Below are positions 1,390 through 64,000 of a stretch of 64,000 nucleotides of DNA, piece after piece. How positions within the stretch are numbered: position 1 is the stretch's first letter; each line of letters begins with the position of its first letter. Made by a program: the position numbers and the translations under genes. The stretch covers positions 1-64,000 of the forward strand of contig MCFE01000062.1 of NCBI GenBank assembly GCA_002104905.1, given 5' to 3'. The notes beneath the pieces were generated by a model. The model was not told where the DNA came from. It did no database searches and was given only the letters and a program-made list of their open reading frames with translations. Source of the stretch: Basidiobolus meristosporus CBS 931.73 (lineage: Eukaryota; Fungi; Basidiobolomycota).

Positions 1390-4300
1390 ATGTTAACCAT
1401 TAGAGAACCCATATTGGAAAACTCTGGAAGCCATGAAGATGGAAAACATCTAACGAAGCCCAGAGAGATGCAGTCAGACGCTTTTCCTTTTTCTCTGGAG
1501 CAAGAGCAAATATGGGCATTTGAGAAGGGTTCTTCTAATTCAGCAAACAACCTTCCGATAGCACTCTTATTGAGAGGGCCACTTGACTGCGATGCTTTGA
1601 AATGGTCCATAGCGCAATTGGTGAATCGTTACCCCCTTTTACGTAGTAAGGTCCTAGATGGTAAAGTTCCTCATCTACAAATAGGAATCACTGGGCCTAC
1701 AGCAATTCAATTAGAGGAGCATGGCGTTCCCAAGATTCCTACCGAAGAAAATATCCGCGAATGTATTGAAGAAGAGGTTAACCAGCCATTCAGTTTAACC
1801 CAAGAATATCCGATCCGCATAAAGCTTCTAAAGTTTATTCAAGACATCAGCCTGATGGTCATTACTGTTCATCGTTTAGCTGCAACGTTGGAAACTATGC
1901 ACTCTCTCCAAAGCAATCTTGCGGTATTATACAACTCGTATGGAGTGGCTAGAGAGCACAACTTTGAGGCTGTTCAAGAATTCAATCCTGAACAGCAATA
2001 TCAGAATATCTCTCAAACCATTTTGAAGGATCAAATTACATTTTGGGAAGAGCATCTAGCCGGACTGGCCCCCATTGGACTATCAACAGACAAGTTACGA
2101 CGAAACAACAGCATTAATCGTGCCCGCATACAAAAAATGCACATCCCAGAGGAGCTTTCAGTCAAGTTAACTCGTATCACAGAGCAGAATCAAACCGATT
2201 TGTATACCACGCTTCTGTCTGCTGTCCAGATACTTTTATACCTCTACACCAAAAATGAAGATATCGCTGTAGCCACTAACCTGCAATTCTATACTTCCAC
2301 TGTTAACACCACGCAAATAGTCAGGTCGGAAATCAAAGGCGAAAAGACTTTCGAAGAATTAATACAAGGAGTTAAACACAAGGTTATTGAAGTCTTAAAA
2401 CACCAGGGCTGGCCTTGGCAAAAGTACTTTTCCGAATCTAACACTAGAGATGAACAAGGATTCCCCAAAATAGAGGTGTACTTTGATGTTCATAATTGGA
2501 AACAAGAGGAAATTCAAATGCATGATCTCGAAGTCACCTGCCTAAACGATTTCGAGCGGTCTACATCATATGAACTGGAAATCCATGTTTTCAACGAAGG
2601 TACTGGCTTACAAATCCAGTTTATCTACCAGACCGATGTGTTACATATCACAACAGTGCAGAAAATGCAGCAGGTTCTCTTCAAGCTACTGGATTCCCTA
2701 ACTTCCGACTCCAGCCTTTCACTAGACAACGTCGAGTTGCTAGACAAACAAGAACGCGAAATGCTAATGCAGGATTGGAATGAGACTGAGTCAATATATC
2801 CAAATTCCCAATCAATCCCAGATGAATTCGAGAAGCAGGTCCTGGCTGCACCAGAGGCAGTAGCAGTAGTACACAATGATACTAAGTTGACCTACCAGCA
2901 ACTACACCAAATGTCCGATCGCCTTGCCTCTCATCTAGTCAGCCTGGGCGTGCGCATTGAGTCTGCCGTTGGTGTTTGCTTGGATCGCTCTCCCCTAATG
3001 GTGGTCGCCTTGTTGGCCATCCTCAAGGCTGGCGGTGCCTACGTCCCACTTGACTCCCAGTATCCCTCCGAAAGACTGCAGTTCATGCTTTCCGACACAG
3101 AGGCCACCGTCGTGATTTGCCAGAAATCAAACATGGCCAGCATACCCAAGGGAGAGTACAAGCTGGTATGCCTGGATGAGGAGATGGATAGTCTGATGAG
3201 TGGCCCGTACACCCCGACACCAAGTCGGTCAACCTCATCCAACCTTGCTTACATCATATATACCTCAGGGTCCACCGGAACTCCTAAGGGTGTTTTGGTT
3301 GAGCAACGGTCAGTGGTCCGCCTGGTCAAGAACACCGACTATGTGAACATCCAGGCAGGCGACAGCATTGCCCACATCTCCAGCACTTCATTCGATGCTG
3401 CAACATTCGAGGTTTGGGGGGCTCTGCTCAATGGCGCCACAGTCGTATGCATGAGTCATGCTGAGGTGATTGACCTGAACGTCTTGGCCAAGAACATGGC
3501 AAAATACTCGGTAACCACCATGTTCCTGACCACCGCTTTGTTCAACCGCATAGTCGAGGATTCCCCCGATGTGTTTGTCAGTGTGAAGCAGGTAATGTTC
3601 GGAGGCGAGGCTGTCGACCATCGCTCTGTCCAAAGGTTCCTTGCCCTACCAGATCGACCAAGGCTTCTCCATGTTTACGGCCCTACGGAAAACACCACGT
3701 TCTCAACCTGGTATGAGGTGGACCACATCTCAAGCAACATCCCCATCGGAAAGCCCATCGCCAACAGCAAGGCCTACGTCCTCGATCACCAGCTCTTCCC
3801 TGTTCCTGTCGGCTTTGTGGGTGAGCTTTGTGTCGCTGGGGATGGCTTGGCTAGAGGCTACCTCAATAGGCCAGACCTGACTGCTCAGAAGTTCGTGGTC
3901 AACCCCAATCCGGAATGCAACGGCGAGATTCTCTATCGCACTGGAGATCTCGCACGCTACAGAAGTGACGGGAACCTGGAGTTTGTTGGGCGTATGGATC
4001 ATCAAGTCAAGGTCCGCGGATTCCGGATTGAGTTGGGCGAGGTTGAGAATGCACTCCTACAGCAGGACTCAATCAAGGAATGTGTGGTTGTGGCCCGCGA
4101 AGACCTCTCGGGAGAGAAGCAGCTGGTTGGCTATGTGGTGGTCAATGGGGAGACGACCTCTGGAATGGATGTCCAACAAGTGGATGAGTGGGAGACCGTG
4201 TTCGACCAGCATGTCTACGAGGAGCTTGGAAATGATATAGCCGAGCCATCATTCAACATCACCGGGTGGAAATGTACCCTCACCGGGGAAGATATTCCAT

Positions 4301-7300
4301 CAGATGAAATGCGAGAGTGGCTGAGAGATACCATATCCGGCATCAGAAGCCTTGGAGGTCAGGACATCCTTGAAATTGGCTGCGGTACTGGAATGTTGCT
4401 CTTTGAGATTGCCCCTCATTGTAGGCGCTACCTGGGCACGGATGTCTCCAGCGCGGCTCTCTCGTACGTCAGCAGGTACCTCGATACCTACTCACTCCGT
4501 GATACTGTCCAGCTCGAGCAGCGTGGTGGTGACCAACTGGAAGATATGGTGGAGCAAAGCTTCGACACTGCGATCTGCAACTCTGTGGCCCAGTACTTTC
4601 CCAATATCGACTATCTCAGGGCGGTGATCACACGAGTGGTCAAGCTACTTCGCCCCGGAGGCCACTTCTTCCTTGGAGATATGCGTAGTCTCGTCCTCCT
4701 CAAGCATTTCCACTCCTCCATGGAGCTCCACAAAGCTCACAGCGACCTCAAGGTCTCCGAGCTGCAGCAAATCATCTCAGATCGAATGCTGAGCGAGAAA
4801 GAGCTGCTTGTCGATCCAGCCTTCTTCTTTGCTCTCAAGGAAGAGATCCCGGAGATCTCCCACGTGGATATTCTGACCAAGTCCGGGGATAGTCTCAACG
4901 AGCTCACCCAATATCGTTACCAAGCGATTATTCATGTTGGCCCTGGCAGCGACCGAGAGGTCGTGGAACACTGGCTAGACTATCAAGAGGCCAGCCTGAC
5001 CCTCGAGAGAGTCGAGGAGCAGCTTCTGCTAAGTCGGCCTCAGTGCCTCGCCCTGGAGAATGTTCCCAACATCCGGCTATCCCGCGAGGTTGCTCTCGTC
5101 AAGCTTCTGGAGGCCGAGCAGTCCAAAGATTTGACAGTCGCGAGGGTACGAGAACTGCTCGAGAAGGAAGCACCAACTGGAGTGAAAGTGGATGATCTGT
5201 ACACTCTTGCTGAGAAGACAGGATACCATGTGAGCGTCAGCTGGAACAGACAGCTACGCGACGGAAGCTTTGATGTGATTTTCAGCAAGCGACAAGGTAC
5301 TGAAAGTCTTCCTCCACGCCACCTATTCAAAGAGCCAGAGTTCTATGCTTGGAAGTGGAAGTCCTATGGCAACAACCCTATGCACGAGGCAGTCAACAAG
5401 CAGTTCGTCCCACGCTTGCGGGATCAGCTACGTGCAGTGTTGCCCAAGTTCATGGTCCCAAGTGCGATAGTCATCCTCGATGCTCTCCCTCTCATGCCCA
5501 ATGGTAAGATCAACCGCCGAGCACTGCCTGCACCTGGATCCCATCAGGTCGGCGATGATGCCGCCTATGTGCCCCCCAGAACCCCATTAGAGCTGGCAAT
5601 CGGAAGCATTGTGGCCGAGATCCTTGGCTTCGAGAGGGTCAGCATTCACGACAACTTCTTCGACTTGGGAGGCCATTCCCTGTCAGCCACCAAGGTGATG
5701 TCTCGTGTCCGCATCATAGTGAAGCAGGAAGTGCCACTGAAGATGCTCTTCGAAGCACCCACCGTCGCATCCTTGAGTGAAAGACTGGAAGAAATGATCA
5801 ATGAGAACACCGAGGTTGATGAATCGGTCCCTGTGCTGAGGAGACTTGATCGTGGGGAAGAAATTCCGCTGTCGTTTGCGCAGGAGAGACTGTGGTTTAT
5901 GAACGAACTGGTTCCTAATAGCCCTTTTTATAATATTCCACTGGTCCTTACACTAAATGGGCATTTAAACGAATGCGCGTTGAAATCGTCAATCGAGTCG
6001 ATTTTGAATCGTCATGAAGCCTTGAGAACTGTATTTCCGGTGGTGGACGGGAAGCCTATCCAACGAATTGAAGGCAGTACTTCTATTCAATGGGAGATTG
6101 AAGACATATCGCAGCATTCGAACTGTAAAGAGCTACTTAAATCGAGAATCACGGAGGAGTCAGTGAAGCCGTTTGACTTGGTTAGAGGCCCGGTAATCCG
6201 GTTTAATGTTATCCGTGTTGCTCCCCAGGAACATGTGCTCTTGATTATTTTGCATCATATTGTTTCCGACGGATGGTCTATTACTCTTATTCAGGAGGAA
6301 CTATCTGCTCTGTATAGCTCTCACATACATGGAGATCAGCCACAACTCTCAAGCTTACCAATTCAATATGCCGATTTTTCAGTGTGGCAGCGGGAGTGGC
6401 TACAAGGTGAGAATTTAGATCGACAGATGAAATATTGGAAGGGACAGCTTGAAGGAATTGCAAATTTGGCATTGCCAACAGACTACCCAAGAGCATCAAT
6501 GATGAATTTCCAAGGTGCTGTAGTGAGCACCCAAATACCCCGTGGTTTGACTCAGCGATTGGTTGATATCTGTCAGAAAAAGGGAACCACCCTGTTTATG
6601 ACGCTTTTGGCTGCATTCGAAATTTTGTTGTATCGCTATACTGAGCAGGAAGATATTGTGATTGGCTCCCCGATCGCAAATCGCAACCGAAAAGAGATCG
6701 AAGGTTTGATTGGGTTTTTCGTAAATACCCAGGTTCTTCGGGTACATATTGAGCACGACTTGACCTTCTCGAACCTCCTATCTCGCGTGAAGGCAGTAAC
6801 CCTGGATGCTTACAGCCATCAGGATGTACCATTCGAGCAAATCGTCGCGGAGCTTCAACCAGAGCGAGACCTTAGCCGTAATCCATTGGTTCAGGTGATG
6901 TTTGCTTTGCAAGAAGTGTTGATAGACGAATTTCCGTTCGGTGACATGACAGCAACTTCAGTAAGCTCCAACGAGATCACCACAAGATTTGACCTTGAAG
7001 TGCACTTCTGGAAGCATAATGAGGGGCTCAAAGCCGACTTCATCTACAGTACAAGTCTTTTCAAGTCGGAAACAATGGAGCGAATGCTACGCCACTTGCA
7101 TAGAATATTGGAAGCCGTGGCCGAGGATCCATATCAGCCCATTGGCAATATTGATATTTTGGATCCTTCGGAGCGACAAAAATATCTGATCGACTGGAAC
7201 CCGATTGACAAGACTCCTCGCGATGGCAAATCCATCGTAGGTGCGTTTGAGGATCAAGTACGAAATACTCCCGACGCCGTAGCTGTGATCCAGGATGAGT

Positions 7301-10300
7301 TGACTCTCACATATCTCCAATTACAAGAGCAGTCCAATCAGCTAGCTAGATACCTGATGAGCATTGGTGTCGAAACCGAGTCGTACGTTGGTATATGTAT
7401 GGAACGTTCGCCGCTAATGATTATCGCACTACTGGCTATACTCAAAGCTAGAGCGGCCTATGTCCCACTTGATTCCCAATCACCACCAGATAGACTGGCA
7501 CACATACTGACAGACACTAGGGCGACGGTTGTAATCTGTCAAAAGTCAACTATGAGCATTTTACCGGATGGTGACTATAAGAATGTGTGTCTTGATCTAG
7601 AGATCCCTGGGTTGTTAGACCTTTCTCCAGATCGCATCGAAAACGCACCCACCCCTAACAACCTTGCGTATATTATATACACCTCAGGTTCCACGGGAAC
7701 ACCCAAAGGGGTTCTTATCGAACATCGTTCTGTCGTTGGTATGGTAAAAGATGTTCAATATCTCAGTATATGTAATGAGGACAAAGTATCACATATTGCT
7801 AGTCCATCGTTTGATGCCGCTGTGTTCGAGATATGGGGATCCCTTCTTAACGGCGCAATGCTGGTATGCTTTAGCCGGGAAGATATTCTTGACCTGGGGG
7901 TCTTTTCGAAGAAAGTCGCCTCATATGGGGTGAATACTCTCTTCTTGACCACAGCGCTCTTCAACCATTGCGTTGAGTCTGCACCTGGACTTTTTGATCG
8001 AGTTGACAATGTTCTGATTGGTGGTGAGCAGGCTGATCATCGTAGAGTCAAGCAGTTCTTGGAATTGTCTACTGGCGGTAGACTATTGAATATGTATGGC
8101 CCTACTGAAAATTCCACCTTTTCTACCTGGCACGAGATTACTCAGCAGTACGATACAGTTCCCATTGGAAAGCCTATTACAGGTAGACGCGCCTATATTC
8201 TCGATAGATCTCTGAGACCGGTTCCTGTGGGTGTAATCGGCGAGTTATGCGTTGCCGGAGGAGGGCTGGCTAGAGGCTATCTTAACCGAGAACAAGCTAC
8301 TTCCCAAAGCTTCGTCATTAACCCAAACAAAGAATGTAATGGCGAGGTTATCTATCGTACCGGAGATCGGGCTCGTTTAATGAATGATGGTAATATACAA
8401 TTTGTTGGTCGTATCGATCACCAAGTGAAAATCCGTGGCTATCGAATCGAGCTGGGTGAGATAGACGGTGTGTTGCAGCGTAACAAGTCTGTCGCACAAA
8501 GTTATGTTACGACCAAATCACTCTCAGCAGATGAGAAGAGTATAGTGGCATATGTTGTGATGAGCAAGGAAGCGCCACCCCTCAGTCTTCCTTCACTAAC
8601 GGAATATCTGGCCTCGAAACTCCCCAAATACATGATGCCAACTGCGATAATTATTCTGGATCAAATGCCATTATTACCTAGTGGCAAGCTGGACTTCAAG
8701 GCGTTACCGAATCCTGGAGCTCAAAACACTCTCTCTCATGTAGCCTACGTAGCACCGCGAGATTTTACTGAGCAATGCATTGCTGAAGCTTGGCAAGAAG
8801 TCCTGAATATTGAAAGAGTTGGAATTTATGACAATTTCTTCGATCTTGGTGGCCACTCGCTTTCAGCAACAAAAGCAATCTCCCGTATAGGGCATTTATT
8901 CAAGAAAGAGATAGCATTGAAATGGATCTTCGAATTTCCCACAGTGATCTCGTTGGGCCAAAAGGTATCTGAGGTTCTCGGAAGTAATAGCTGCTCTATG
9001 AATTCGCCGATAGTGAAGCAGCAGAAAAAAAACACATTGCAAATGTCATTTGCCCAAGAACGACTGTGGTTTATGAATCAGTTGATGCCTGATAATCCAT
9101 TTTACAACATGCCGCTTGCCCTGAATATCAAGGGCAAATTAGATATCCAGGTTCTGGAGTCCGTGATCAACACAGTTGTCAAGCGTCATGATATCCTTAG
9201 AACCACATTCGGGAATTCGGGATGCAACCCTATTCAAAAGATTAACCCCCATAGCGAGTTTCTGCTTCAAATGGTAGATATTTCAAAATCTCCTGGAAAT
9301 ACTCGGGAGCTGAGGGCGTATATTACATCCGAATCACAAAAACCGTTCGATTTGGTCAATGGCCCAGTTATACGGGTGAATTTAGTTAAAGTCGGCGAGG
9401 AAGAGCATATTCTTCTGATCGTCCTTCATCACATCATCTCTGACGGTTGGTCCATCACTGTGTTACAAGAAGAGCTTTCCTTGTTATATAGGGCCTATTC
9501 ACAGGGCTTACCGTCCCCGCTGCATGAACTAACTATTCAGTACGCCGATTTCGCAGTATGGCAAAGGGAATGGTTACAAGGTGAAAACTTCGAGAAGCAG
9601 ATGCAGTACTGGAAAGATCAATTGAGTGGAATTGGAGACTTATCGCTGCCCACGGATTACATTCGACCACCTGTGTTAAGCTACAATGGAGGGTTAGAGC
9701 AATTGGAACTTTCTGCTTCCCTTACTAATGATTTACGCGACCTGAGTAAGAAGGAATCGTCTACTTTATTCATGACCCTCTTAGCCGCATTTGAGGTACT
9801 GCTATTTAGATACACAGGGCAGGAAGATATTGCGATCGGCTCTCCGATTGCGAATAGAAATCGAAAGGAAATTGAGCGCCTCATCGGTTTCTTCGTAAAT
9901 ACTCAGGTGATACGTGTTCAGGTTGATCGTGAGGCAACTTTCAATGAGCTAGTATCCCGCGTGAAGGAGGTAACCTTGGGAGCGTATAGTCATCAAGATG
10001 TGCCATTCGAACAAATTGTTGCTGAGCTACAACCCGAGAGAGACTTGAGTCGCAATCCATTAGTTCAAGTGATGTTCGTTTTGCAAGATGCAACCGTGGA
10101 CGCCTTTACTTTTGGAGACCTAAATGCTACCTTGGTGAACACTGACCGAATTAGTACACGTTTTGATTTAGAAGTACATTTCTGGAAACGTGATGAAGGA
10201 TTGAAGGCAGATTTCATCTACAGTACTGACCTGTTCAGCCCTAAAACCATGAAACACATGCTTTTAGACTTGCATAAGATACTGCAGATGGTGGCAACCA

Positions 10301-13300
10301 ACCCTGATCTTCCTATTGGCGATCTGAACATGCTGGATTCCGCCGAAAGAGGTAGTCTGCTAGTTGATTGGAATAATACATCAACAGACTATCCACGAGA
10401 CAATTCCTTGGTGGCCATTTTTAAGAATCAAGTTCAAAGCACACCTGAGGCAGTAGCAGTAGTACACAATGATACTAAGCTGACCTACCAGCAACTACAC
10501 CAAATGTCCGATCGCCTTGCCTCTCATCTAGTCAGCCTGGGCGTGCGCATTGAGTCTGCCGTTGGTGTTTGCTTGGATCGCTCTCCCCTAATGGTGGTCG
10601 CCTTGTTGGCCATCCTCAAGGCTGGCGGTGCCTACGTCCCACTTGACTCCCAGTATCCCTCCGAAAGACTGCAGTTCATGCTTTCCGACACAGAGGCCAC
10701 CGTCGTGATTTGCCAGAAATCAAACATGGCCAGCATACCCAAGGGAGAGTACAAGCTGGTATGCCTGGATGAGGAGATGGATAGCCTGATGAGTGGCCCG
10801 TACACCCCGACACCAAATCGGTCAACCTCATCCAACCTTGCTTACATCATATATACCTCGGGGTCCACCGGAACTCCTAAGGGTGTTTTGGTTGAGCAAC
10901 GGTCAGTGGTCCGCCTGGTCAAGAACACCGACTATGTGAACATCCAGGCAGGCGACAACATTGCCCACATCTCCAGCACTTCATTCGATGCTGCAACATT
11001 CGAGGTTTGGGGGGCTCTGCTCAATGGCGCCACAGTCGTATGCATGAGTCATGCTGAGGTGATTGACCTGAACGTCTTGGCCAAGAACATGGCAAAATAC
11101 TCGGTAACCACCATGTTCCTGACCACCGCTTTGTTCAACCGCATAGTCGAGGATTCCCCCGATGTGTTTGTCAGTGTGAAGCAGGTGATGTTCGGAGGCG
11201 AGGCTGTCGACCATCGCTCTGTCCAAAGGTTCCTTGCCCTACCAGATCGACCAAGGCTTCTCCATGTTTACGGCCCTACGGAAAACACCACGTTCTCAAC
11301 CTGGTATGAGGTGGACCACATCTCAAGCAACATCCCCATCGGAAAGCCCATCGCCAATAGCAAGGCCTACGTCCTCGATCACCAGCTCTTCCCTGTTCCT
11401 GTCGGCTTTGTGGGTGAGCTTTGTGTCGCTGGAGATGGCTTGGCTAGAGGCTACCTCAATAGGCCAGACCTGACTGCTCAGAAGTTCGTGGTCAACCCCA
11501 ATCCGGAATGCAACGGCGAGATTCTCTATCGCACTGGAGATCTCGCACGCTACAGAAGTGACGGGAACCTGGAGTTTGTTGGGCGTATGGATCATCAAGT
11601 CAAGGTCCGCGGATTCCGGATTGAGTTGGGCGAGGTTGAGAATGCACTCCTACAGCAGGACTCAATCAAGGAATGTGTGGTTGTGGCCCGCGAAGACCTC
11701 TCGGGAGAGAAGCAGCTGGTTGGCTATGTGGTGGTCAATGGGGAGACGACCTCTGGAATGGATGTCCAACAAGTGGATGAGTGGGAGACCGTGTTCGACC
11801 AGCATGTCTACGAGGAGCTTGGAAATGATATAGCCGAGCCATCATTCAACATCACCGGGTGGAAATGTACCCTCACCGGGGAAGATATTCCATCAGATGA
11901 AATGCGAGAGTGGCTGAGAGATACCATATCCGGCATCAGAAGCCTTGGAGGTCAGGACATCCTTGAAATTGGCTGCGGTACTGGAATGTTGCTCTTTGAG
12001 ATTGCCCCTCATTGTAGACGCTACCTCGGCACGGATGTCTCCAGCGCGGCTCTCTCGTACGTCAGCAGGTACCTCGATACCTACTCACTCCGTGATACTG
12101 TCCAGCTCGAGCAGCGTGGTGGTGACCAACTGGAAGATATGGTGGAGCAAAGCTTCGACACTGCGATCTGCAACTCTGTGGCCCAGTACTTTCCCAATAT
12201 CGACTATCTCAGGGCGGTGATCACACGAGTGGTCAAGCTACTTCGCCCCGGAGGCCACTTCTTCCTTGGAGATATGCGTAGTCTCGTCCTTCTGAAGCAT
12301 TTCCACTCCTCCATGGAGCTCCACAAAGCTCACAGCGACCTCAAGGTCTCCGAGCTGCAGCAAATCACCTCGGATCGAATGCTGAGCGAGAAAGAGCTGC
12401 TTGTCGATCCAGCCTTCTTCTTTGCTCTCAAGGAAGAGATCCCGGAGATCTCCCACGTGGATATTCTGACCAAGTCCGGGGATAGTCTCAACGAGCTCAC
12501 CCAATATCGTTACCAAGCGATTATTCATGTTGGCCCTGGCAGCGACCGCGAGGTCGTGGAACACTGGCTAGACTATCAAGAGGCCAGCCTGACCCTCGAG
12601 AGAGTCGAGGAGCAGCTTCTGCTAAGTCGGCCTCAGTGCCTCGCCCTGGAGAATGTTCCCAACATCCGGCTATCCCGCGAGGTTGCTCTCGTCAAGCTTC
12701 TGGAGGCCGAGCAGTCCAAAGATTTGACAGTCGCGAGGGTACGAGAACTGCTCGAGAAGGAAGCACCAACTGGAGTGAAAGTGGATGATCTGTACACTCT
12801 TGCTGAGAAGACAGGATACCATGTGAGCGTCAGCTGGAACAGACAGCTACGCGACGGAAGCTTTGATGTGATTTTCAGCAAGCGACAAGGTACTGAAAGT
12901 CTTCCTCCACGCCACCTATTCAAAGAGCCAGAGTTCTATGCTTGGAAGTGGAAGTCCTATGGCAACAACCCTATGCACGAGGCAGTCAACAAGCAGTTCG
13001 TCCCACGCTTGCGGGATCAGCTACGTGCAGTGTTGCCCAAGTTCATGGTCCCAAGTGCGATAGTCATCCTCGATGCTCTCCCTCTCATGCCCAATGGTAA
13101 GATCAACCGCCGAGCACTGCCTGCACCTGGATCCCATCAGGTCGGCGATGATGCCGCCTATGTGCCCCCCAGAACCCCATTAGAGCTGGCAATCGGAAGC
13201 ATTGTGGCCGAGATCCTTGGCTTCGAGAGGGTCAGCATTCACGACAACTTCTTCGACTTGGGAGGCCATTCCCTGTCAGCCACCAAGGTGATGTCTCGTG

Positions 13301-16300
13301 TCCGCATCATAGTGAAGCAGGAAGTGCCACTGAAGATGCTCTTCGAAGCACCCACCGTCGCATCCTTGAGTGAAAGACTGGAAGAAATGATCAGTGAGAA
13401 CACCGAGGTTGATGAATCGGTCCCTGTGCTGAGGAGACTTGATCGTGGGGAAGAAATTCCGCTGTCGTTTGCGCAGGAGAGACTGTGGTTTATGAACGAA
13501 CTGGTTCCTAATAGCCCTTTTTATAATATGCCGCTGACCTTGACACTAAGTGGAACTCTCAATATTGATGCTCTGAAGAAATCTATCCTGAATATCATTC
13601 ATCGGCATGAAACCTTAAGAACAACTTTCCAACTCTCCTCTAACGGTCCAGTTCAAACGATTAAGCCTGTCTCCGATTTTTCTACGTCTCTTGTTGATTT
13701 CGTCGATATAACCTCCAATCAACAGTCGCTTCGAACTATTATTGCTCAGGAATCTGCTAAGCCTTTTAGCTTGAAGGATGGACCCTTAATTAGAGTCAAG
13801 CTCATACAAATTGCATCAGGAGAGTATGTACTAGTTATTGTTATACACCACATTGTATCCGATGGGTGGTCAATAGCTGTGTTGCAGAAGGAGCTTGCAG
13901 CCTTTTATGAATCTAATATATGTTCTAAGCCACAACCCTTATCCGAACTATCTATTCAGTACGTGGACTTTGCCGTATGGCAGCGTGAATGGCTACAAGG
14001 TGTAAGGCTGCAGAAGCAATCAAGTTACTGGAAAAAACAACTACAAGGCATTACACCACTAGCTTTGGCTACTGATAAGATACGCCCAGCAATATCGAGT
14101 CACCATGGCCAGACTTATCAACTATTTTTATCAGGACCATTGACTAGAAAGCTACGAGCCCTGGGTCAAAACCATGGTGCAACATTATTTATGACACTGT
14201 TGGCAGCTTTCCAGGTCTTGCTCTACAAGAGCACCGGTCAGAACGACATCGCCGTTGGTTCTCCTATTGCCAATCGTAATCGAAAAGAAATTGAGGCACT
14301 GATTGGTTTCTTTGTCAACACCTTGGTGCTTCGTGTGCAGGTTAACCCGGACGCGACGTTCAGTGATATACTTAACCAAGTCAAAGCCACTACCCTCGAT
14401 GCTTATGGCAATCAGGATTTACCATTTGAAAAGGTGGTAGCAGAATTACAGCCTGAACGCGATCTGAGTCGTAATCCACTAGTACAGGTGATCTTTGCAC
14501 TGCATGAATTGTCAATTGACAAATTCGAAATGAAAGATCTAAAGGTCAATGTCTACAACGATGACCTGGTAACATCCCGCATGGATTTAGAGGTGCACAT
14601 CTATCCACAAGATTATGGACTGAGGATAGAAGCAATCTACTGTAGTGATTTGTTTGTTTCAAGCACCATTGAGCAATTGTTCAAAGGTTTCCTTAACATC
14701 TTGGAATCTATTACTGCAGACTCCCATCAAACGGTGGGAAGAATTAGTTTACTTGATGCCTCCGAACGCGAATCTCTGCTTTTAAACCGTAATCTGACAC
14801 ACTCCCAGTACCCATGCGACCAATCCATGGTCGACCTCTTTGAGAGTCAAGTCAAAATAATTCCCGATGATATTGCTGTGGTAGACAATGACCTTCAACT
14901 TACCTACCAGCAACTACACCAAATGTCCGATCGCCTTGCCTCTCATCTAGTCAGCCTGGGCGTGCGCATTGAGTCTGCCGTTGGTGTTTGCTTGGATCGC
15001 TCTCCCCTAATGGTGGTCGCCTTGTTGGCCATCCTCAAGGCTGGCGGTGCCTACGTCCCACTTGACTCCCAGTATCCCTCCGAAAGACTGCAGTTCATGC
15101 TTTCCGACACAGAGGCCACCGTCGTGATTTGCCAGAAATCAAACATGGCCAGCATACCCAAGGGAGAGTACAAGCTGGTATGCCTGGATGAGGAGATGGA
15201 TAGTCTGATGAGTGGCCCGTACACCCCGACACCAAATCGGTCAGCCTCATCCAACCTTGCTTACATCATATATACCTCGGGGTCCACCGGAACTCCTAAG
15301 GGCGTTTTGGTTGAGCAACGGTCAGTGGTCCGCCTGGTCAAGAACACCGACTATGTGAACATCCAGACAGGTGACAACATTGCCCACATCTCCAGCACTT
15401 CATTCGATGCTGCAACATTCGAGGTTTGGGGGGCTCTGCTCAATGGTGCCACGGTTGTTTGTATAAAGCATTCCGAAGTTATTGACTTCCAACTGCTTTC
15501 CAAGAATCTATCTACCCACTCCGTAAGCATTCTATTCTTGACTACAGCACTATTCAACCGCATAGTCGAGGATGCCCCCAATGTGTTTGACAGTGTGAAG
15601 CAGGTGATGTTCGGAGGTGAGGCTGCAGATCCCCACTCTATTCAACAATTTCTCTCGCTGGTCAACCGGCCAAGATTGCTGAATATTTACGGCCCTACCG
15701 AAAACACTGCATTCTCAACCTGGTATGAGGTGGACCACATCTCAAGCAACATCCCCATCGGAAAGCCCATCGCCAATAGCAAGGCCTACGTCCTCGATCA
15801 CCAGCTCTTCCCTGTTCCTGTCGGCTTTGTGGGTGAGCTTTGTGTCGCTGGGGATGGCTTGGCTAGAGGCTACCTCAATAGGCCAGACTTGACTGCTCAG
15901 AAGTTCGTGGTCAACCCCAATCCGGAATGCAACGGCGAGATTCTCTATCGCACTGGAGATCTCGCACGCTACAGAAGTGACGGGAACCTGGAGTTTGTTG
16001 GGCGTGTGGATCGTCAAGTGAAGATTCGTGGCTTCCGAATCGAGTTAGATGAAATCAAATCCAAATTAATGGAGCACTCTGGCGTCAAGGAATGCGCTGT
16101 GCTAGTAAATGAGAAGTCTGGTGTAAAGCGCATTATAGCTTATGTTGTCAAAAGTGCAGATTCTCTAGATTCTAACGAGGACACTCTACTGAACTACCTT
16201 GCCAAATCCCTACCAAGGTATATGCTACCACACGCATTAATCATGCTAGATGGCCTTCCGCTTCTACCTAGTGGGAAGTTGGATACTCAATCTCTCGCCG

Positions 16301-17388
16301 CATTAACTGATAACTCCTTAACCTCAAAGTCTCACGTTGAGCCACGCACTCCTCTAGAAAGCAGCCTCGCAAGTATCATGGCCGAGGTACTATCTCTGGA
16401 ACAAGTTGGTATCGATGATAGCTTTTTCGATCTTGGTGGGCATTCGTTATTGTCGATTCATTTCATTGCAAGAATTCGGAAGTCTTTGGAAACGAACGTC
16501 AGCTTACAAGCTCTCTTTGAGGCACCAACTGTAGCTATGTTGGCGAAATATATCAGCAAGAACCAGAATGGGGAGCACGATATTATGGAAAATCCAGTAA
16601 CCGTACTCCGCAAAGGAAGTGACGAAACTCCTATTGTCATGGTTCATGCCATTGGCGGTGGTCTTTCGTGTTACCAGCCACTTCTCGAAGCATTTTGTCA
16701 AGAACAGACTATATACGGAGTGTATTCCTCTGATTTCCTCGGACTTAGTCAGAGACAAACATTCCCAGATATGAAATCCATGGCTGAGTATTATGTTCAG
16801 TCGTTACTGAGACTCTCCAACGCAAAGAGGTTTATACTTGGCGGTTGGTCATATGGAGGCAATGTTGCCTTTGAGATGGCCATCCAACTACAGAAGATGG
16901 GAATCACGGTGCCGATAGTGGTGCTTTTTGACTCATATCCCCTATTCGGAGTTCCCAATCACGAGTTGTTCTCAGTCCCGTTGACCACAATGATTACCAC
17001 TTTGATGAACCAGATGCAAGAATCCACGGAGATTGTGTCGGAGGAGTTAATCATGGTGCGAGACCTATTCGGATTGAGTACGAACATGACCAGAGACGAT
17101 GAGGTCACCCTTGAGCTACTTACCAGCGCCCTTAAGAGGATTAACCACATGCAGGAATATCTTCCTGACCCCTATGAGGGCACAGTATACCAGTTTAGAA
17201 GCTCCGACGTCCAAGTGTACGATCCCGAAGATACTGAGCGTGTCTCGAGTCAGGCAAGACAATGGTCCGAATTCGTCAATGGGGAGTACATCACCGAAAC
17301 AGTGGCTGGAACCCATTTCACCATAATGCAGTCGCCTTATGTTGAAACTATTGCCACAAAACTGGAGCCAATTGTTAGAGGATTATAA
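1390..17388 (+). CDS. Tetramodular NRPS, C0-A1(nMT)-T1-C2-A2-T2-C3-A3(nMT)-T3-C4-A4-T4-TE, single exon (~5330 aa)
   Basis: Uninterrupted ORF. Four A domains (YIIYTSGSTGTPKG, YGPTE, YRTGD), four T domains (FFDLGGHSL), three intact C domains (HHIxSDG), two SAM-binding N-methyltransferases (ILEIGCGTG) inserted between A8 and A9, and a terminal thioesterase (GWSYGG...GTHF). First ATG is 1390, alternative 1468; the ORF track's 1330 start is TTG. Confidence 0.97.
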   Translation: MLTIREPILENSGSHEDGKHLTKPREMQSDAFPFSLEQEQIWAFEKGSSNSANNLPIALLLRGPLDCDALKWSIAQLVNRYPLLRSKVLDGKVPHLQIGITGPTAIQLEEHGVPKIPTEENIRECIEEEVNQPFSLTQEYPIRIKLLKFIQDISLMVITVHRLAATLETMHSLQSNLAVLYNSYGVAREHNFEAVQEFNPEQQYQNISQTILKDQITFWEEHLAGLAPIGLSTDKLRRNNSINRARIQKMHIPEELSVKLTRITEQNQTDLYTTLLSAVQILLYLYTKNEDIAVATNLQFYTSTVNTTQIVRSEIKGEKTFEELIQGVKHKVIEVLKHQGWPWQKYFSESNTRDEQGFPKIEVYFDVHNWKQEEIQMHDLEVTCLNDFERSTSYELEIHVFNEGTGLQIQFIYQTDVLHITTVQKMQQVLFKLLDSLTSDSSLSLDNVELLDKQEREMLMQDWNETESIYPNSQSIPDEFEKQVLAAPEAVAVVHNDTKLTYQQLHQMSDRLASHLVSLGVRIESAVGVCLDRSPLMVVALLAILKAGGAYVPLDSQYPSERLQFMLSDTEATVVICQKSNMASIPKGEYKLVCLDEEMDSLMSGPYTPTPSRSTSSNLAYIIYTSGSTGTPKGVLVEQRSVVRLVKNTDYVNIQAGDSIAHISSTSFDAATFEVWGALLNGATVVCMSHAEVIDLNVLAKNMAKYSVTTMFLTTALFNRIVEDSPDVFVSVKQVMFGGEAVDHRSVQRFLALPDRPRLLHVYGPTENTTFSTWYEVDHISSNIPIGKPIANSKAYVLDHQLFPVPVGFVGELCVAGDGLARGYLNRPDLTAQKFVVNPNPECNGEILYRTGDLARYRSDGNLEFVGRMDHQVKVRGFRIELGEVENALLQQDSIKECVVVAREDLSGEKQLVGYVVVNGETTSGMDVQQVDEWETVFDQHVYEELGNDIAEPSFNITGWKCTLTGEDIPSDEMREWLRDTISGIRSLGGQDILEIGCGTGMLLFEIAPHCRRYLGTDVSSAALSYVSRYLDTYSLRDTVQLEQRGGDQLEDMVEQSFDTAICNSVAQYFPNIDYLRAVITRVVKLLRPGGHFFLGDMRSLVLLKHFHSSMELHKAHSDLKVSELQQIISDRMLSEKELLVDPAFFFALKEEIPEISHVDILTKSGDSLNELTQYRYQAIIHVGPGSDREVVEHWLDYQEASLTLERVEEQLLLSRPQCLALENVPNIRLSREVALVKLLEAEQSKDLTVARVRELLEKEAPTGVKVDDLYTLAEKTGYHVSVSWNRQLRDGSFDVIFSKRQGTESLPPRHLFKEPEFYAWKWKSYGNNPMHEAVNKQFVPRLRDQLRAVLPKFMVPSAIVILDALPLMPNGKINRRALPAPGSHQVGDDAAYVPPRTPLELAIGSIVAEILGFERVSIHDNFFDLGGHSLSATKVMSRVRIIVKQEVPLKMLFEAPTVASLSERLEEMINENTEVDESVPVLRRLDRGEEIPLSFAQERLWFMNELVPNSPFYNIPLVLTLNGHLNECALKSSIESILNRHEALRTVFPVVDGKPIQRIEGSTSIQWEIEDISQHSNCKELLKSRITEESVKPFDLVRGPVIRFNVIRVAPQEHVLLIILHHIVSDGWSITLIQEELSALYSSHIHGDQPQLSSLPIQYADFSVWQREWLQGENLDRQMKYWKGQLEGIANLALPTDYPRASMMNFQGAVVSTQIPRGLTQRLVDICQKKGTTLFMTLLAAFEILLYRYTEQEDIVIGSPIANRNRKEIEGLIGFFVNTQVLRVHIEHDLTFSNLLSRVKAVTLDAYSHQDVPFEQIVAELQPERDLSRNPLVQVMFALQEVLIDEFPFGDMTATSVSSNEITTRFDLEVHFWKHNEGLKADFIYSTSLFKSETMERMLRHLHRILEAVAEDPYQPIGNIDILDPSERQKYLIDWNPIDKTPRDGKSIVGAFEDQVRNTPDAVAVIQDELTLTYLQLQEQSNQLARYLMSIGVETESYVGICMERSPLMIIALLAILKARAAYVPLDSQSPPDRLAHILTDTRATVVICQKSTMSILPDGDYKNVCLDLEIPGLLDLSPDRIENAPTPNNLAYIIYTSGSTGTPKGVLIEHRSVVGMVKDVQYLSICNEDKVSHIASPSFDAAVFEIWGSLLNGAMLVCFSREDILDLGVFSKKVASYGVNTLFLTTALFNHCVESAPGLFDRVDNVLIGGEQADHRRVKQFLELSTGGRLLNMYGPTENSTFSTWHEITQQYDTVPIGKPITGRRAYILDRSLRPVPVGVIGELCVAGGGLARGYLNREQATSQSFVINPNKECNGEVIYRTGDRARLMNDGNIQFVGRIDHQVKIRGYRIELGEIDGVLQRNKSVAQSYVTTKSLSADEKSIVAYVVMSKEAPPLSLPSLTEYLASKLPKYMMPTAIIILDQMPLLPSGKLDFKALPNPGAQNTLSHVAYVAPRDFTEQCIAEAWQEVLNIERVGIYDNFFDLGGHSLSATKAISRIGHLFKKEIALKWIFEFPTVISLGQKVSEVLGSNSCSMNSPIVKQQKKNTLQMSFAQERLWFMNQLMPDNPFYNMPLALNIKGKLDIQVLESVINTVVKRHDILRTTFGNSGCNPIQKINPHSEFLLQMVDISKSPGNTRELRAYITSESQKPFDLVNGPVIRVNLVKVGEEEHILLIVLHHIISDGWSITVLQEELSLLYRAYSQGLPSPLHELTIQYADFAVWQREWLQGENFEKQMQYWKDQLSGIGDLSLPTDYIRPPVLSYNGGLEQLELSASLTNDLRDLSKKESSTLFMTLLAAFEVLLFRYTGQEDIAIGSPIANRNRKEIERLIGFFVNTQVIRVQVDREATFNELVSRVKEVTLGAYSHQDVPFEQIVAELQPERDLSRNPLVQVMFVLQDATVDAFTFGDLNATLVNTDRISTRFDLEVHFWKRDEGLKADFIYSTDLFSPKTMKHMLLDLHKILQMVATNPDLPIGDLNMLDSAERGSLLVDWNNTSTDYPRDNSLVAIFKNQVQSTPEAVAVVHNDTKLTYQQLHQMSDRLASHLVSLGVRIESAVGVCLDRSPLMVVALLAILKAGGAYVPLDSQYPSERLQFMLSDTEATVVICQKSNMASIPKGEYKLVCLDEEMDSLMSGPYTPTPNRSTSSNLAYIIYTSGSTGTPKGVLVEQRSVVRLVKNTDYVNIQAGDNIAHISSTSFDAATFEVWGALLNGATVVCMSHAEVIDLNVLAKNMAKYSVTTMFLTTALFNRIVEDSPDVFVSVKQVMFGGEAVDHRSVQRFLALPDRPRLLHVYGPTENTTFSTWYEVDHISSNIPIGKPIANSKAYVLDHQLFPVPVGFVGELCVAGDGLARGYLNRPDLTAQKFVVNPNPECNGEILYRTGDLARYRSDGNLEFVGRMDHQVKVRGFRIELGEVENALLQQDSIKECVVVAREDLSGEKQLVGYVVVNGETTSGMDVQQVDEWETVFDQHVYEELGNDIAEPSFNITGWKCTLTGEDIPSDEMREWLRDTISGIRSLGGQDILEIGCGTGMLLFEIAPHCRRYLGTDVSSAALSYVSRYLDTYSLRDTVQLEQRGGDQLEDMVEQSFDTAICNSVAQYFPNIDYLRAVITRVVKLLRPGGHFFLGDMRSLVLLKHFHSSMELHKAHSDLKVSELQQITSDRMLSEKELLVDPAFFFALKEEIPEISHVDILTKSGDSLNELTQYRYQAIIHVGPGSDREVVEHWLDYQEASLTLERVEEQLLLSRPQCLALENVPNIRLSREVALVKLLEAEQSKDLTVARVRELLEKEAPTGVKVDDLYTLAEKTGYHVSVSWNRQLRDGSFDVIFSKRQGTESLPPRHLFKEPEFYAWKWKSYGNNPMHEAVNKQFVPRLRDQLRAVLPKFMVPSAIVILDALPLMPNGKINRRALPAPGSHQVGDDAAYVPPRTPLELAIGSIVAEILGFERVSIHDNFFDLGGHSLSATKVMSRVRIIVKQEVPLKMLFEAPTVASLSERLEEMISENTEVDESVPVLRRLDRGEEIPLSFAQERLWFMNELVPNSPFYNMPLTLTLSGTLNIDALKKSILNIIHRHETLRTTFQLSSNGPVQTIKPVSDFSTSLVDFVDITSNQQSLRTIIAQESAKPFSLKDGPLIRVKLIQIASGEYVLVIVIHHIVSDGWSIAVLQKELAAFYESNICSKPQPLSELSIQYVDFAVWQREWLQGVRLQKQSSYWKKQLQGITPLALATDKIRPAISSHHGQTYQLFLSGPLTRKLRALGQNHGATLFMTLLAAFQVLLYKSTGQNDIAVGSPIANRNRKEIEALIGFFVNTLVLRVQVNPDATFSDILNQVKATTLDAYGNQDLPFEKVVAELQPERDLSRNPLVQVIFALHELSIDKFEMKDLKVNVYNDDLVTSRMDLEVHIYPQDYGLRIEAIYCSDLFVSSTIEQLFKGFLNILESITADSHQTVGRISLLDASERESLLLNRNLTHSQYPCDQSMVDLFESQVKIIPDDIAVVDNDLQLTYQQLHQMSDRLASHLVSLGVRIESAVGVCLDRSPLMVVALLAILKAGGAYVPLDSQYPSERLQFMLSDTEATVVICQKSNMASIPKGEYKLVCLDEEMDSLMSGPYTPTPNRSASSNLAYIIYTSGSTGTPKGVLVEQRSVVRLVKNTDYVNIQTGDNIAHISSTSFDAATFEVWGALLNGATVVCIKHSEVIDFQLLSKNLSTHSVSILFLTTALFNRIVEDAPNVFDSVKQVMFGGEAADPHSIQQFLSLVNRPRLLNIYGPTENTAFSTWYEVDHISSNIPIGKPIANSKAYVLDHQLFPVPVGFVGELCVAGDGLARGYLNRPDLTAQKFVVNPNPECNGEILYRTGDLARYRSDGNLEFVGRVDRQVKIRGFRIELDEIKSKLMEHSGVKECAVLVNEKSGVKRIIAYVVKSADSLDSNEDTLLNYLAKSLPRYMLPHALIMLDGLPLLPSGKLDTQSLAALTDNSLTSKSHVEPRTPLESSLASIMAEVLSLEQVGIDDSFFDLGGHSLLSIHFIARIRKSLETNVSLQALFEAPTVAMLAKYISKNQNGEHDIMENPVTVLRKGSDETPIVMVHAIGGGLSCYQPLLEAFCQEQTIYGVYSSDFLGLSQRQTFPDMKSMAEYYVQSLLRLSNAKRFILGGWSYGGNVAFEMAIQLQKMGITVPIVVLFDSYPLFGVPNHELFSVPLTTMITTLMNQMQESTEIVSEELIMVRDLFGLSTNMTRDDEVTLELLTSALKRINHMQEYLPDPYEGTVYQFRSSDVQVYDPEDTERVSSQARQWSEFVNGEYITETVAGTHFTIMQSPYVETIATKLEPIVRGL
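1468..2760 (+). other. NRPS N-terminal condensation-like domain with degenerate active site
   Basis: Has C-domain motifs (FSLEQEQIW; LYTTLLSAVQILLYLYTKNEDIAV), but HHxxxDG reads HRLAATL at ~1870-1890. Boundaries approximate. Confidence 0.8.
2854..5936 (+). repeat. Direct repeat copy 1 (A1-nMT-T1-linker plus start of C2), 3083 bp
   Basis: Matches 10447-13529 at constant offset 7593 with about 16 substitutions counted by eye and no indels. Confidence 0.95.
4150..5390 (+). other. N-methyltransferase domain embedded in A1
   Basis: VDEWETVFD...GWKCTLTGEDIPSDEMREW...ILEIGCGTGMLLF...NSVAQYFP, followed by return to A9/A10 (LPKFMVPS...PNGKINRRALP). Boundaries approximate. Confidence 0.92.
10447..13529 (+). 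repeat. Direct repeat copy 2 (A3-nMT-T3-linker plus start of C4), 3083 bp
   Basis: Near-identical to 2854-5936; duplicated antisense ORFs in the ORF track show the same 7593 offset. Confidence 0.95.
11743..12983 (+). other. N-methyltransferase domain embedded in A3
   Basis: Near-identical copy of the module 1 nMT at offset +7593. Confidence 0.92.
14902..15452 (+). repeat. Partial third copy, N-terminal part of A4
   Basis: Near-identical to 2890-3440 (offset 12012). Confidence 0.9.
15712..16005 (+). repeat. Partial third copy, C-terminal part of A4 core
   Basis: Near-identical to 3700-3993 (offset 12012). Confidence 0.9.
16620..17385 (+). other. Terminal thioesterase domain
   Basis: VHAIGGGLSCY, GWSYGG nucleophile elbow, FDSYP, VAGTHFTIM. 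Boundaries approximate. Confidence 0.9.
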
Positions 17389-19423: not shown

Positions 19424-20664
19424 ATGGTGATCTGGTCCTTGTATTGCTCTTTGCTTCTAGGTATCGCTTTAGGGATTAACGCGTGGGCAAATGCGACCAT
19501 CATTGTCTTGGTAAGCCATGTTTTGCATTTGGCCACTTAGAAATCATACTTATTTTGCTGTATCCTTGTTGGAAAATATCAGTCCACAAACGACACATAC
19601 CAGGTTTGTTGCGCCAAGCGTGGATCTCTCGCTGCTTATTATTTACACACTGTTCAGGATCGCATTGCTGCTTTCGGTCCTCGCCTTAGTGACAAGGGAA
19701 TAAATGGAACGTTGGCGCTGGTAGAAACATATGCTCCCGAAAACAAGCATGCCTGCAAAGTAATCCCACCCCCGCCAGTGGCTGACTGGATTGCCCTGGT
19801 TGAACGGGGTCACTGCCCTTTTATTGAGAAAGTCCGCAATATGCAGATGTCCGGTGCTATCGCTGTGGTTGTGGGGGATGCCGAGTTCGATAGTTTAGTT
19901 ACTATGTATGCCTCTGGTGAGTTCTTTGTATTGCTCCCCCAACTATACTTTTTCAAACTAACGTCTCATCGATCAAAACAGGTGACACTTCCGATGTTAG
20001 GATACCCTCAGTATTTACTCCACAATCTCAATACGAGCAAATTCGCTTTCTCAGCTCATTTGTAGATGAGCCATTGATGATCCATTTAATCAAAGACGAT
20101 ATGTTAGACTGGTAATGCTCCTCCTATATCTCAAGCAGCACACCTGTATTGATGATTCTTCCAAAGGCCCTTGCTTGATGTTATTATTGTTACTTTGTTA
20201 TCGCCCACAATCATGATGACATTTATATATGCCTTATGGAGATTTCGCCAACGTCAACGGCAGAAGCGCGACCTTGCACCTGTCAGTGTCATCTCAAATC
20301 TCCCGAAGAAAAAGTTTTACAAGGAGAAGAGGAAGGGCAACGAGCCTCAAGAGTGTGTGATCTGTTTGGAGGATTATGTAGATGAGGACAGATTGCGTAT
20401 TCTTCCTTGCAAGCACGAATTCCACATTGACTGCATTGGTAATTTGTTACCTTACGTTGTGCCATGATTCAAGAAAACTCACCTTTGTTCCTTTATAGAT
20501 CCTTGGCTTACCACTCGTAAGAAATTTGTAAGTCAATCTTTCTTGTTGACTGATCGAGGATATATTCCCAGTATTAATACAAATCACAGTGCCCTATCTG
20601 TAAGCAAGATACCTGCCCTAGCGAAGATACGCCACTGCTTCCGATTCGAGAAGGAAATCCTTAG
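19424..20664 (+). CDS. PA-domain transmembrane RING-H2 E3 ubiquitin ligase (RNF13/RMR-like), multi-exon
   Basis: Spliced model: signal peptide MVIWSLYCSLLLGIALG, PA domain (DRIAAFGP...IALVERGHCPFIEKVRNMQMSGAIAVVVGD), TM helix, RING-H2 CVICLEDY...LPCKHEFHIDC/DPWLTTRKKF/CPICK, and a C-terminal EDTPLL dileucine sorting motif. GT-AG introns, e.g. at 19511 and 19604. Confidence 0.9.
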
Positions 20665-21965
20665 ATGCTTATGGTACAAAGAGCCTTATTGAATTTCCAC
20701 CTCAACAACCATCCTTGTCATTTACACTTCTGATCCCTTTATTTTCCTATGATCTATCCTTGCTATGTTGCAGCAGTAGCCCTAAACTCTAGACAGAAGT
20801 ACTACCCCAATCCTCCTTGATGTATTTCCGTGTCTCGAGTTAGTATTAATTTGGAATTTTCACTGGTGTCAGCCTTCTCACCATCACTTTCCATTTCTTA
20901 TTTTCTTGAATTCATTTCAACAATTCATTCATCATGTAAATAATTATTTTCCCTTTCCAGCGTTAGTCTGGCTCCCTTATGAACTAAATTAAAGGAAAAT
21001 CTACACCTAATACTGACTCGAGTCAAAAATGCTCGCCACGAAAGCAGAGTTAGACTGAAGGATGACCTCTATGCTGAAAAGACGTCAGTCAACCTTTTAG
21101 CCCCACGATCTTTAGCGCACCAACGTAATTCATTGGCATTAACAAATCAGAAAAGTGCGTATTGATCCCCTTGACCCTCTAGCCAACCTCATATGATGCG
21201 ATGTGTTATGCATGGGGCTTCCTTGCGATCCTGACCCTAACAACGCCACTAACAGATTGGGTCAATATGGTAGCCATATTTACATACTAACCACATATAT
21301 CAATGCCAGGCGAATTGCCCAGCATGCTTACATATGATGCTTGCTCGTAACACTGTTAACAGGCATGGCCAGATTTCCTCAGCGCATTCATTATCAAGAC
21401 ATGTCAATGCTCCATGCACCCAGTCTCCTGAACATTCATGACCTTTATCGTGCTGGACGTCGTGAATGCATTCATGTGATCAATCAAATGGGTACAATCG
21501 TCATCATCAATCTAAACTTGAATTGGTACGGTCACGCCTGATCTTTTTTGGCCTAAGCCTGAAGTTTTATGCTGAGCCAAATCCAACAAGGATTTCCTTA
21601 AATAATGATTCCTGCGACCCGTGTGATTTTTTTAGGGAATTGGATGAATTATGAAGTCACTGTATTATAGGTTTAAAAGAACTTGAGCATGCACATGGAT
21701 ATTAGTAGACAGCATCATATTTCTTTTGACTCGGTTCGACACTCGGTCAACTAAGCATACAAGACATATATCAAGGTGAAAGGGATCTAAGCCTAGCTTG
21801 AATAGTATCTCGCTCAATTTATAAAATGTAAGCAATATACTCTGCAGTTCAATGCTTTCTCTTTTGGTTTTGGTCAGCTCATATGTACACCCAAGTAGTA
21901 TCGATAAACTAACTGATTTGCTTGGCAGAAAATAACAGCAATTCCACTGGTTGGTCTGAAGTTCA

Positions 21966-63820: not shown

Positions 63821-64000
63821 AGACTCTTACAACATTAGGTTCACATGAGTATTGACCAAGAAGTGATATGATAGCATTACATTGTTGAAGGTCAAACTGT
63901 TATCCCCATGGATAAGACTACTTTGACTCAAAGCTGTAAGAGAAGAGAAAGAAGACCATATTGCTATTGTGGCAAGCCTCTGAGCCATGAAGCATGCAGA

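Follow-up and report, generated by a model that had tools for sequence, protein, structure and literature searches.

The first 64 kb of scaffold MCFE01000062.1 (192,483 bp) of Basidiobolus meristosporus CBS 931.73, analysed here in full (64,000 nucleotides) and referred to as the window, carries a nonribosomal peptide synthetase (NRPS) gene that is the already published gene model 387529 (ORX93211.1) of Tabima et al. 2020 (PMC7466969). Our analysis makes it very likely that this published orphan NRPS is an ancient acquisition of bacterial type, now resident in the fungal genome and transcribed, with aliphatic, N-methylating chemistry, a relic first condensation domain and duplicated modules that are still being homogenised. 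The host is an early-diverging fungus, as a preliminary description of this DNA had supposed.

The assignment to 387529/ORX93211.1 follows from the identical genome and scaffold, the matching architecture and the matching order of neighbours. A 275-aa reading frame of the window (28532-29356, minus strand) recurs unchanged and at identical positions in MCFE01000062.1 of assembly GCA_002104905.1. Tabima et al. 2020 described 387529 as a tetramodular enzyme with four adenylation (A) domains, four condensation (C) domains, two N-methylation domains and a thioesterase (TE), and listed it as a candidate for horizontal gene transfer (HGT) without fungal BLAST matches and with a best match in the beta-proteobacteria. 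According to these authors, expression in culture was highest for ORX93211.1 among the NRPSs (74 transcripts per million, TPM); they guessed at a 'cyclic N-methylated peptide' as product and assigned the gene to 'cluster 5' together with a zinc-finger protein, a carrier protein, a transporter, a peptidase and a SNARE-associated protein. In our literature search, ORX93211 was mentioned in that paper only. Since both the gene and its bacterial-type reading are already in the literature, the finding of the NRPS is a rediscovery, and the novelty implied in the preliminary description falls away, as gene, architecture, HGT candidacy, expression and the cyclic N-methylated guess were all on record. 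The dead first C domain, the 99.5% identical cassettes with raised GC content at third codon positions (GC3), the mosaic fourth A domain and the housekeeping-like character of the neighbours were not found reported in Tabima et al. 2020. These additions (the dead domain, gene conversion with its GC3 signature and the misfit of the basidiosin hypothesis, all treated below) are modest and do not overturn current understanding.

The NRPS is encoded in one uninterrupted open reading frame (ORF; 1330-17388, forward strand) with its first ATG at 1390, the start codon being placed directly after an in-frame stop, and the ORF list gives a product of 5,332 amino acids (aa). Pfam and motif scans established the domain order C1-A1(MT)-T1-C2-A2-T2-C3-A3(MT)-T3-C4-A4-T4-TE, in which MT denotes a methyltransferase and T a thiolation domain, and the Pfam families Condensation, AMP-binding, AMP-binding_C, PP-binding, class I methyltransferase and Thioesterase were matched across both halves of the protein. 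Judged by their motifs, the catalytic signatures of four A, two MT, four T, three C and one TE domains are all present: the A3, A5 and A8 cores are retained in all four A domains, GGHSL occurs in all four T domains, and HHxxxDG is found in C2, C3 and C4 and fails in C1. The MT domains are inserted in A1 and A3, with the S-adenosylmethionine (SAM) motif ILEIGCGTG at aa 994 and 3525 and also the motif NSVAQYFP; in A1, the A8 core at aa 867, MT motif I at aa 994 and the A10 core at aa 1371 locate the insertion between A8 and A9. An A1-MT query matched LgrA and the interrupted A-MT of TioS (PDB 5wmm; aa 5-754, E 4.5e-147), so that insertion site, SAM motif and structural match together mark an interrupted A domain with a backbone N-methyltransferase. 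In the TE, GWSYG, FDSYP and GTHF align to the TEs of AB3403 and Vlm2, whereby Asp and His are candidates by alignment; the repeated C-A-T motifs and the C-terminal TE with its candidate triad are those of a putative modular, linear, bacterial-style type I NRPS. No epimerase was detected in the NRPS by Pfam, and a motif search for the additional HH motif that marks dual E/C (epimerisation/condensation) domains found none. The 16 kb single exon, four modules, methyltransferases in modules 1 and 3, lack of an epimerase and terminal TE of the preliminary description were thereby confirmed; its account of four modules, two MTs and a TE stands, having missed the degenerate C domain at the N-terminus.

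Comparison of C3 with solved structures gave the best scores for Txo1/Txo2 (1e-105) and TycC6 (LCL; 2e-83), followed by SrfA-C (3e-42) and fungal psoA (6e-36), with E domains at ~1e-14 and the CDA starter C domain at 7e-11, which classes the condensation domains as LCL-type by the score ranking of C3 rather than by a reference tree. When residues 1-5000 of the NRPS were searched, only the protein itself exceeded 45% identity, and the next 119 of the best 120 matches, at 36-45%, were bacterial or metagenomic (Nostoc, myxobacteria, Acidobacteriota and others). Among the best 120 matches to the MT region, the sole non-bacterial relative is K7432_006735 of B. ranarum (P0247, 68%), the rest being bacterial or unnamed metagenomic. 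A search with the TE covered 1.84 billion representative proteins, of which 150 matches were listed and ten named ones looked up; only one of the matches listed fell below 1e-30, K7432_014021 of B. ranarum (P0360, 58%), and the next nine looked up are 27-33% identical, those with names being bacterial or metagenomic NRPSs or polyketide synthases (PKSs). Taken domain by domain, the best bacterial match reaches 46-52% for the A domains, 45-49% for C2-C4, 39-40% for the MT and 27% for the TE, compared with 55-71%, 56-62%, 68% and 57%, respectively, for B. ranarum; the short T domains and the C-terminal subdomain of the A domains reach ~60-65% against bacteria. In the atlas, all feature neighbours found for the A-T, MT and C pieces are bacterial, which we take as a lead only.

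Taken together, the LCL-type C domains, the TioS-like A-MT, the bacterial nearest relatives and the TE ending support an NRPS of bacterial type, in line with the intronless, TE-terminated and bacterial-type gene of the preliminary description. Its proposed BLAST comparison of the domains gave, among the matches listed, Basidiobolus as the only fungal source of relatives and a bacterial assignment for every named match outside the genus. The HGT candidacy proposed by Tabima et al. 2020 is likewise supported by fungal matches in Basidiobolus only, sequencing depth at the level of the host and eukaryotic flanking genes. An end-to-end alignment pairs P0247 with aa 2364-5332 of the window NRPS at 62% identity. 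As its ORF runs off the beginning of its 17-kb contig, P0247 is a homologue truncated by the assembly, and it shows the layout ...A-T-C-A(MT)-T-C-A-T-TE. The transfer took place before B. meristosporus and B. ranarum diverged. Downstream of P0247 (JASJQH010000308.1, 9330-17315) lie Kre9/KNH and X8 cell-wall genes dissimilar to the neighbours in the window, so either NRPS synteny is not conserved between the two species or P0247 is a paralogue. P0360, on a 5.8-kb contig, ends in A(MT)-T-TE and shares ~59% identity with P0247 and likewise with the window NRPS; its N-methylating last module indicates that this NRPS family diversified within Basidiobolus.

It could alternatively be argued that the gene is no bacterial acquisition and belongs to the vertically inherited fungal CYCLO (cyclosporin/enniatin) lineage. 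In favour of this origin, Tabima et al. 2020 recovered the four A domains as sister to all other fungal CYCLO A domains in their A-domain tree, and composition and third codon positions are host-like outside the converted tracts described below (GC3 0.41-0.47, against 0.47-0.57 in the neighbouring genes). However, the published placement is sister to the CYCLO clade and not inside it, and the same study found no fungal BLAST matches and counted the gene as an HGT candidate. The NRPS closes with a TE and not with a terminal C domain, comparison of its C domains gives much better scores with bacterial LCL-type domains than with a fungal PKS-NRPS C domain, and Basidiobolus contributes the only fungal relatives, every named match outside the genus being bacterial among the matches listed. 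CYCLO-clade sequences were absent among the matches listed in three protein searches and the representative search. Furthermore, CYCLO itself is one of the fungal subfamilies that cluster with bacterial NRPSs, with deep nodes unresolved, and the few TE-bearing CYCLO-like genes are possibly transfers themselves (Bushley and Turgeon 2010). Vertical descent within CYCLO is in our view unlikely, and an ancient acquisition of bacterial type remains the preferred reading.

The first condensation domain, C1, is probably inactive, as judged from its sequence. Besides the failing HHxxxDG column, motifs C2 and C4 have decayed in an alignment to Txo2, and an alignment of 45 sequences revealed deviations at the near-invariant second His, Asp, Gly, Trp and Ser. 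C1 shares at most 27% identity with any other C domain, its own paralogues included. An AlphaFold model (AF2, 30-row alignment; mean pLDDT 76.7, pTM 0.73) superposes on the C domains of Txo2, DhbF and TycC6 with TM scores of 0.75-0.79 (0.79 for Txo2), and C1 is thus predicted to retain the C fold; its sequence and structure matches include the inactive X-domain of glycopeptide synthetases. In the phylogenetic analysis, C1 has a branch length of 1.9 substitutions per site and is nested in the Basidiobolus C-domain clade (support 100), which argues for a decayed product of internal duplication rather than a separately derived starter C domain. C1 would accordingly be a relic of module duplication that kept its fold and lost its catalytic residues. 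A role as starter C or lipo-initiation domain was considered and rejected on account of the HRLAATL motif and of the absence of the CDA starter C domain among the C1 matches. The retained dead domain might have a non-catalytic role, for example in docking or recruitment.

Detailed comparison of the modules revealed two copies of an A-MT-T cassette that differ at 16 positions in 3,083 nt (99.5% identical), bounded by sharp edges at which identity drops to ~60% or less. A4 is a mosaic with respect to A1: 14872-15412 and 15682-16040 are 93-100% identical, whereas the 270 nt in between (15412-15682) reach only 69-77%, and this diverged part is located in the interval from the FDxx to the YGPTE motif, which contains most of the pocket residues. 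FastTree analysis of 260 A cores and 278 C domains, drawn from top matches only, united all Basidiobolus A domains in one clade and all Basidiobolus C domains in another (support 100 each). Within these clades, A1, A3 and A4 of the window cluster together and not with A3' and A4' of B. ranarum, C2 groups with C3 of the window, and C4 pairs with its orthologue. GC3 is ~0.63 in both cassettes, 0.56 in A4 and 0.41-0.47 in C1, C2, A2, T2, C3 and C4, while the corresponding A-MT-T of B. ranarum, at 0.416, is like the remainder of its gene. The cassette identity and the GC3 pattern fit the expectation for repeated GC-biased gene conversion in this lineage; a single recent duplication is insufficient, because it would account for the identity of the cassettes and not for the shift in GC3. 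A foreign origin of the GC-rich cassette was also considered and rejected, as its B. ranarum counterpart is 68-71% similar, compared with 57-66% for other domains. It therefore appears from the comparison of the copies that the modules would have arisen by internal duplication and would still be homogenised by GC-biased gene conversion.

With respect to the product, the pocket codes of the preliminary description proved to be of aliphatic type, and eight of their positions (235, 236, 239, 299, 301, 322, 330 and 331) were reproduced by counting from the motifs FDAAxFExW, GGE and xYGPTENxxF; position 278 was assigned by what we take to be the GrsA numbering. The code DAFFMGVTFK shared by A1 and A3 is, we presume, nearest to the Ile/Val-type consensus codes. 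On this basis all four A domains would load branched-chain aliphatic amino acids: modules 1 and 3 would load the same aliphatic residue, with the inserted MTs predicted to N-methylate the T-bound residues 1 and 3, and modules 2 and 4 would each load a further aliphatic residue. The intact LCL-type domains C2-C4 would join four L-residues, and the TE would release NMe-X1-X2-NMe-X1-X4 (NMe, N-methyl) by hydrolysis, cyclisation or dimerisation. As residue 1 is predicted to be N-methylated, the nucleophile for ring closure or dimerisation would have to be a secondary amine, which somewhat weakens the cyclic tetrapeptide or octapeptide of the preliminary description; we infer that linear release deserves about the same weight as a cyclic tetrapeptide and that an octapeptide deserves less. 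No motif of an MbtH-like partner was found in six frames of the 64-kb window.

The only product so far proposed for ORX93211.1 is the basidiosins, a hypothesis of Luo et al. 2020 as relayed by Tabima et al. 2020, and the NRPS could accordingly be a basidiosin/meristosporin synthetase. These peptides were, in a 2024 account, the only published metabolites isolated from cultured Basidiobolus, and ORX93211.1, for which the hypothesis was cited, is the top-expressed NRPS in culture. However, D as well as L residues occur in basidiosins and meristosporins, the cyclic pentapeptides known from B. meristosporus, whereas the NRPS has four modules in place of five, two N-methyltransferases and neither an E domain nor a dual E/C motif that might supply an epimerising function. 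Judged from the domain content, the assignment is not colinear with the NRPS, and Tabima et al. 2020 themselves state that the link needs genetic confirmation. A basidiosin synthetase is therefore quite improbable. It is possible, though we advance it only tentatively, that the top-expressed NRPS of B. meristosporus makes an undescribed bis-N-methylated aliphatic tetrapeptide, or a cyclic or dimeric form of it, and not basidiosins, that its A-MT-T units are kept identical by GC-biased conversion from which the pocket subdomain of A4 escapes, and that the dead C1 has perhaps a non-catalytic role.

The NRPS is part of the fungal genome, as evidenced by DNA contigs of 13,987 and 18,645 nt from the source-sample reads, which cover 15976-21500 with zero differences and link the 3' end of the NRPS to an intron-bearing PA-domain/RING-finger (PA-RING) gene at one depth of ~150. 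The contamination and chimerism raised as a possible refutation in the preliminary description thus found no support in the read contigs. A 2- to 3-fold higher depth (340-456) is confined to the parts of A4 that are shared with A1 and A3. A search for RNA runs listed none, and evidence at the RNA level came from one run of 2013 from the same study, classed as RNA by its behaviour and not by its label: 15501-17304 is covered without differences or joints at a word depth of ~194, the intergenic 17.5-19.3 kb has zero depth, an adapter stands at one contig end, and four GT..AG joints of 55-65 nt are seen in the PA-RING neighbour (19.9-20.6 kb), in keeping with the introns that the preliminary description had seen in the neighbours. 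Transcription of the NRPS is thereby shown, with no splicing over at least its last 1.8 kb. In a second isolate under the same species label, the 3' end of the NRPS is ~85% and the PA-RING neighbour ~87% identical. Bacterial contamination, a chimeric scaffold join or an artefactual duplicated cassette, which might be suspected from the position of the NRPS 1.4 kb from a scaffold end and from 3-kb near-identical repeats that break short-read contigs, is barely credible in the face of independent Logan contigs that bridge the NRPS and a spliced neighbour at the same depth, the exact coincidence of the depth increase with the sequence common to A1, A3 and A4, the 16 fixed differences between the cassettes, the coverage by the RNA-like run, the homologues in the second isolate and in B. 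ranarum, and the coverage z-score of -0.157 (Tabima et al. 2020).

Several points weigh against an ancient bacterial-type acquisition with aliphatic, N-methylating chemistry. The NRPS begins 1,389 nt from the scaffold end, and a partner further upstream may exist; the RNA evidence reaches only the last 1.8 kb of the gene. The published sister position to the CYCLO A domains stands beside trees of ours that were sampled outside that clade. Bacterial relatives reach no more than 52% in the A, C, MT and TE domains, so the donor is not nameable. The putative substrate calls come from comparing ten-residue codes with consensus codes, and the NRPS has no linked product.

Coordinates of all features are given in Table 1. 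Upstream of the NRPS, the window (1-1389) is non-coding, has 41% GC and reaches the scaffold end. The five genes downstream match the published cluster 5 series in order and look like housekeeping genes, with no hint of tailoring, peptide-dedicated export or regulation. The combination of PA and RING domains in the first of them is E3-ligase-like rather than DNA-binding, although the published antiSMASH label is 'zinc finger transcription factor'.

Table 1. Features of the NRPS and of its neighbours, in window coordinates.
Feature	Position	Strand	Remarks
Whole NRPS gene	1390..17388	+	Single exon, 5,332 codons + stop; JGI gene model 387529 / ORX93211.1
C1, condensation-like, predicted catalytically dead	1462..2814 (aa ~25-475)	+	HHxxxDG column reads HRLAATL at aa 161-167
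Module 1: A1 interrupted by MT between A8/A9, then T1	2827..5814	+	GGHSL from aa 1427; pocket DAFFMGVTFK
Homogenised cassette copy 1 (A1-MT-T1)	2854..5936	+	GC3 0.627
Module 2: C2, A2, T2	5842..8994	+	HHIVSDG at aa 1622; pocket DAFFLGMTFK
Module 3: C3, A3 interrupted by MT, T3	9022..13407	+	HHIISDG at aa 2680; A-MT-T a near copy of that in module 1
Homogenised cassette copy 2 (A3-MT-T3)	10447..13529	+	GC3 ~0.627-0.628
Module 4: C4, A4, T4	13435..16584	+	HHIVSDG at aa 4153; pocket DAFFMGIAFK
Terminal thioesterase	16612..17385	+	Pfam E 4.8e-25; Ser in GWSYG (aa 5152), candidate Asp in FDSYP, candidate His in GTHF
PA-domain/RING-finger gene, spliced	19655..20815	+	Pfam domains at 19712-20467; published cluster 5 'zinc finger' gene; not evidently biosynthetic
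EF-hand mitochondrial carrier	21966-23473		Pfam
SLC26 sulfate permease	24442-26241	-	Pfam
PDZ-containing protease gene	~29.9-33.9 kb		Pfam
VTT (formerly SNARE_assoc) gene	35375-35746	-	Pfam

Further into the window, the N-terminal part of a phytochelatin synthase domain is encoded at 41846-42382 (E 2.8e-12), probably as one exon of a spliced gene. A MetH (B12-dependent methionine synthase) gene at 49339-53094 and an F-box/leucine-rich repeat (LRR) gene at 54821-56471 have second copies on MCFE01000087.1 (10180-13932 and 15458-17115, respectively), with nucleotide identities of 74.6% for MetH (87% in aa) and 72.9% for the F-box/LRR gene; this block is a diverged segmental or whole-genome duplicate. 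The MetH of the window is ~75% identical to proteins of Kickxellomycotina. A dispersed repeat of ~350 bp in an AT-rich region is common to both scaffolds at 76-95% identity (62489-62833 and 63477-63835 in the window; 2583-2935, 3478-3827 and 6636-6969 on MCFE01000087.1) and forms no tandem array.

In Basidiobolus, which lives in association with the gut and is occasionally pathogenic, secondary-metabolite diversity stems mainly from NRPSs of bacterial type, and our analysis flags the only published product assignment of ORX93211.1, the basidiosins, as unfit for its domain content. The very recent, GC-biased intragenic homogenisation bears on the natural recombination of NRPS modules and on possible breakpoints for engineering; if the tentative proposal above is true, the modules of this NRPS hold natural A-MT-T exchange units whose identity is maintained through GC-biased gene conversion.

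Among known systems, the cluster 5 NRPS of Tabima et al. 2020 is the same gene, with the same four A, four C, two N-methylation and TE domains and the same five neighbours. The interrupted domain A4aM4A4b of TioS (thiocoraline; PDB 5wmm) resembles the window enzyme in its MT between A8 and A9 and in SAM motif I, whereas the window NRPS resides in a eukaryote, has predicted aliphatic substrates and shows no MbtH-like motif in the window. The malpicyclin and malpibaldin synthetases of Mortierella alpina and the 'surfactin-like' NRPSs of Basidiobolus are likewise bacterial-type, TE-using enzymes of early-diverging fungi that have been attributed to HGT. Unlike the window NRPS with its four modules, LCL-type C domains only and two N-methyltransferases, they are pentamodular or larger and make D-containing peptides, and the A domains of 387529 fall outside the surfactin-like clade (Tabima et al. 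2020). The X-domain of glycopeptide synthetases (PDB 4tx2/4tx3) has, like C1, the C fold without the catalytic motif; it lies near the C-terminus and recruits P450s, whereas C1 is N-terminal and may be a mere relic. CYCLO NRPSs (SimA and the enniatin/beauvericin synthetases) share with the window NRPS the N-methylating modules, the internal module duplication and a nearby published A-domain placement. They release their products via a terminal C-type domain, whereas the window NRPS ends in a TE, and the 120 best matches to its MT region include no Dikarya protein.

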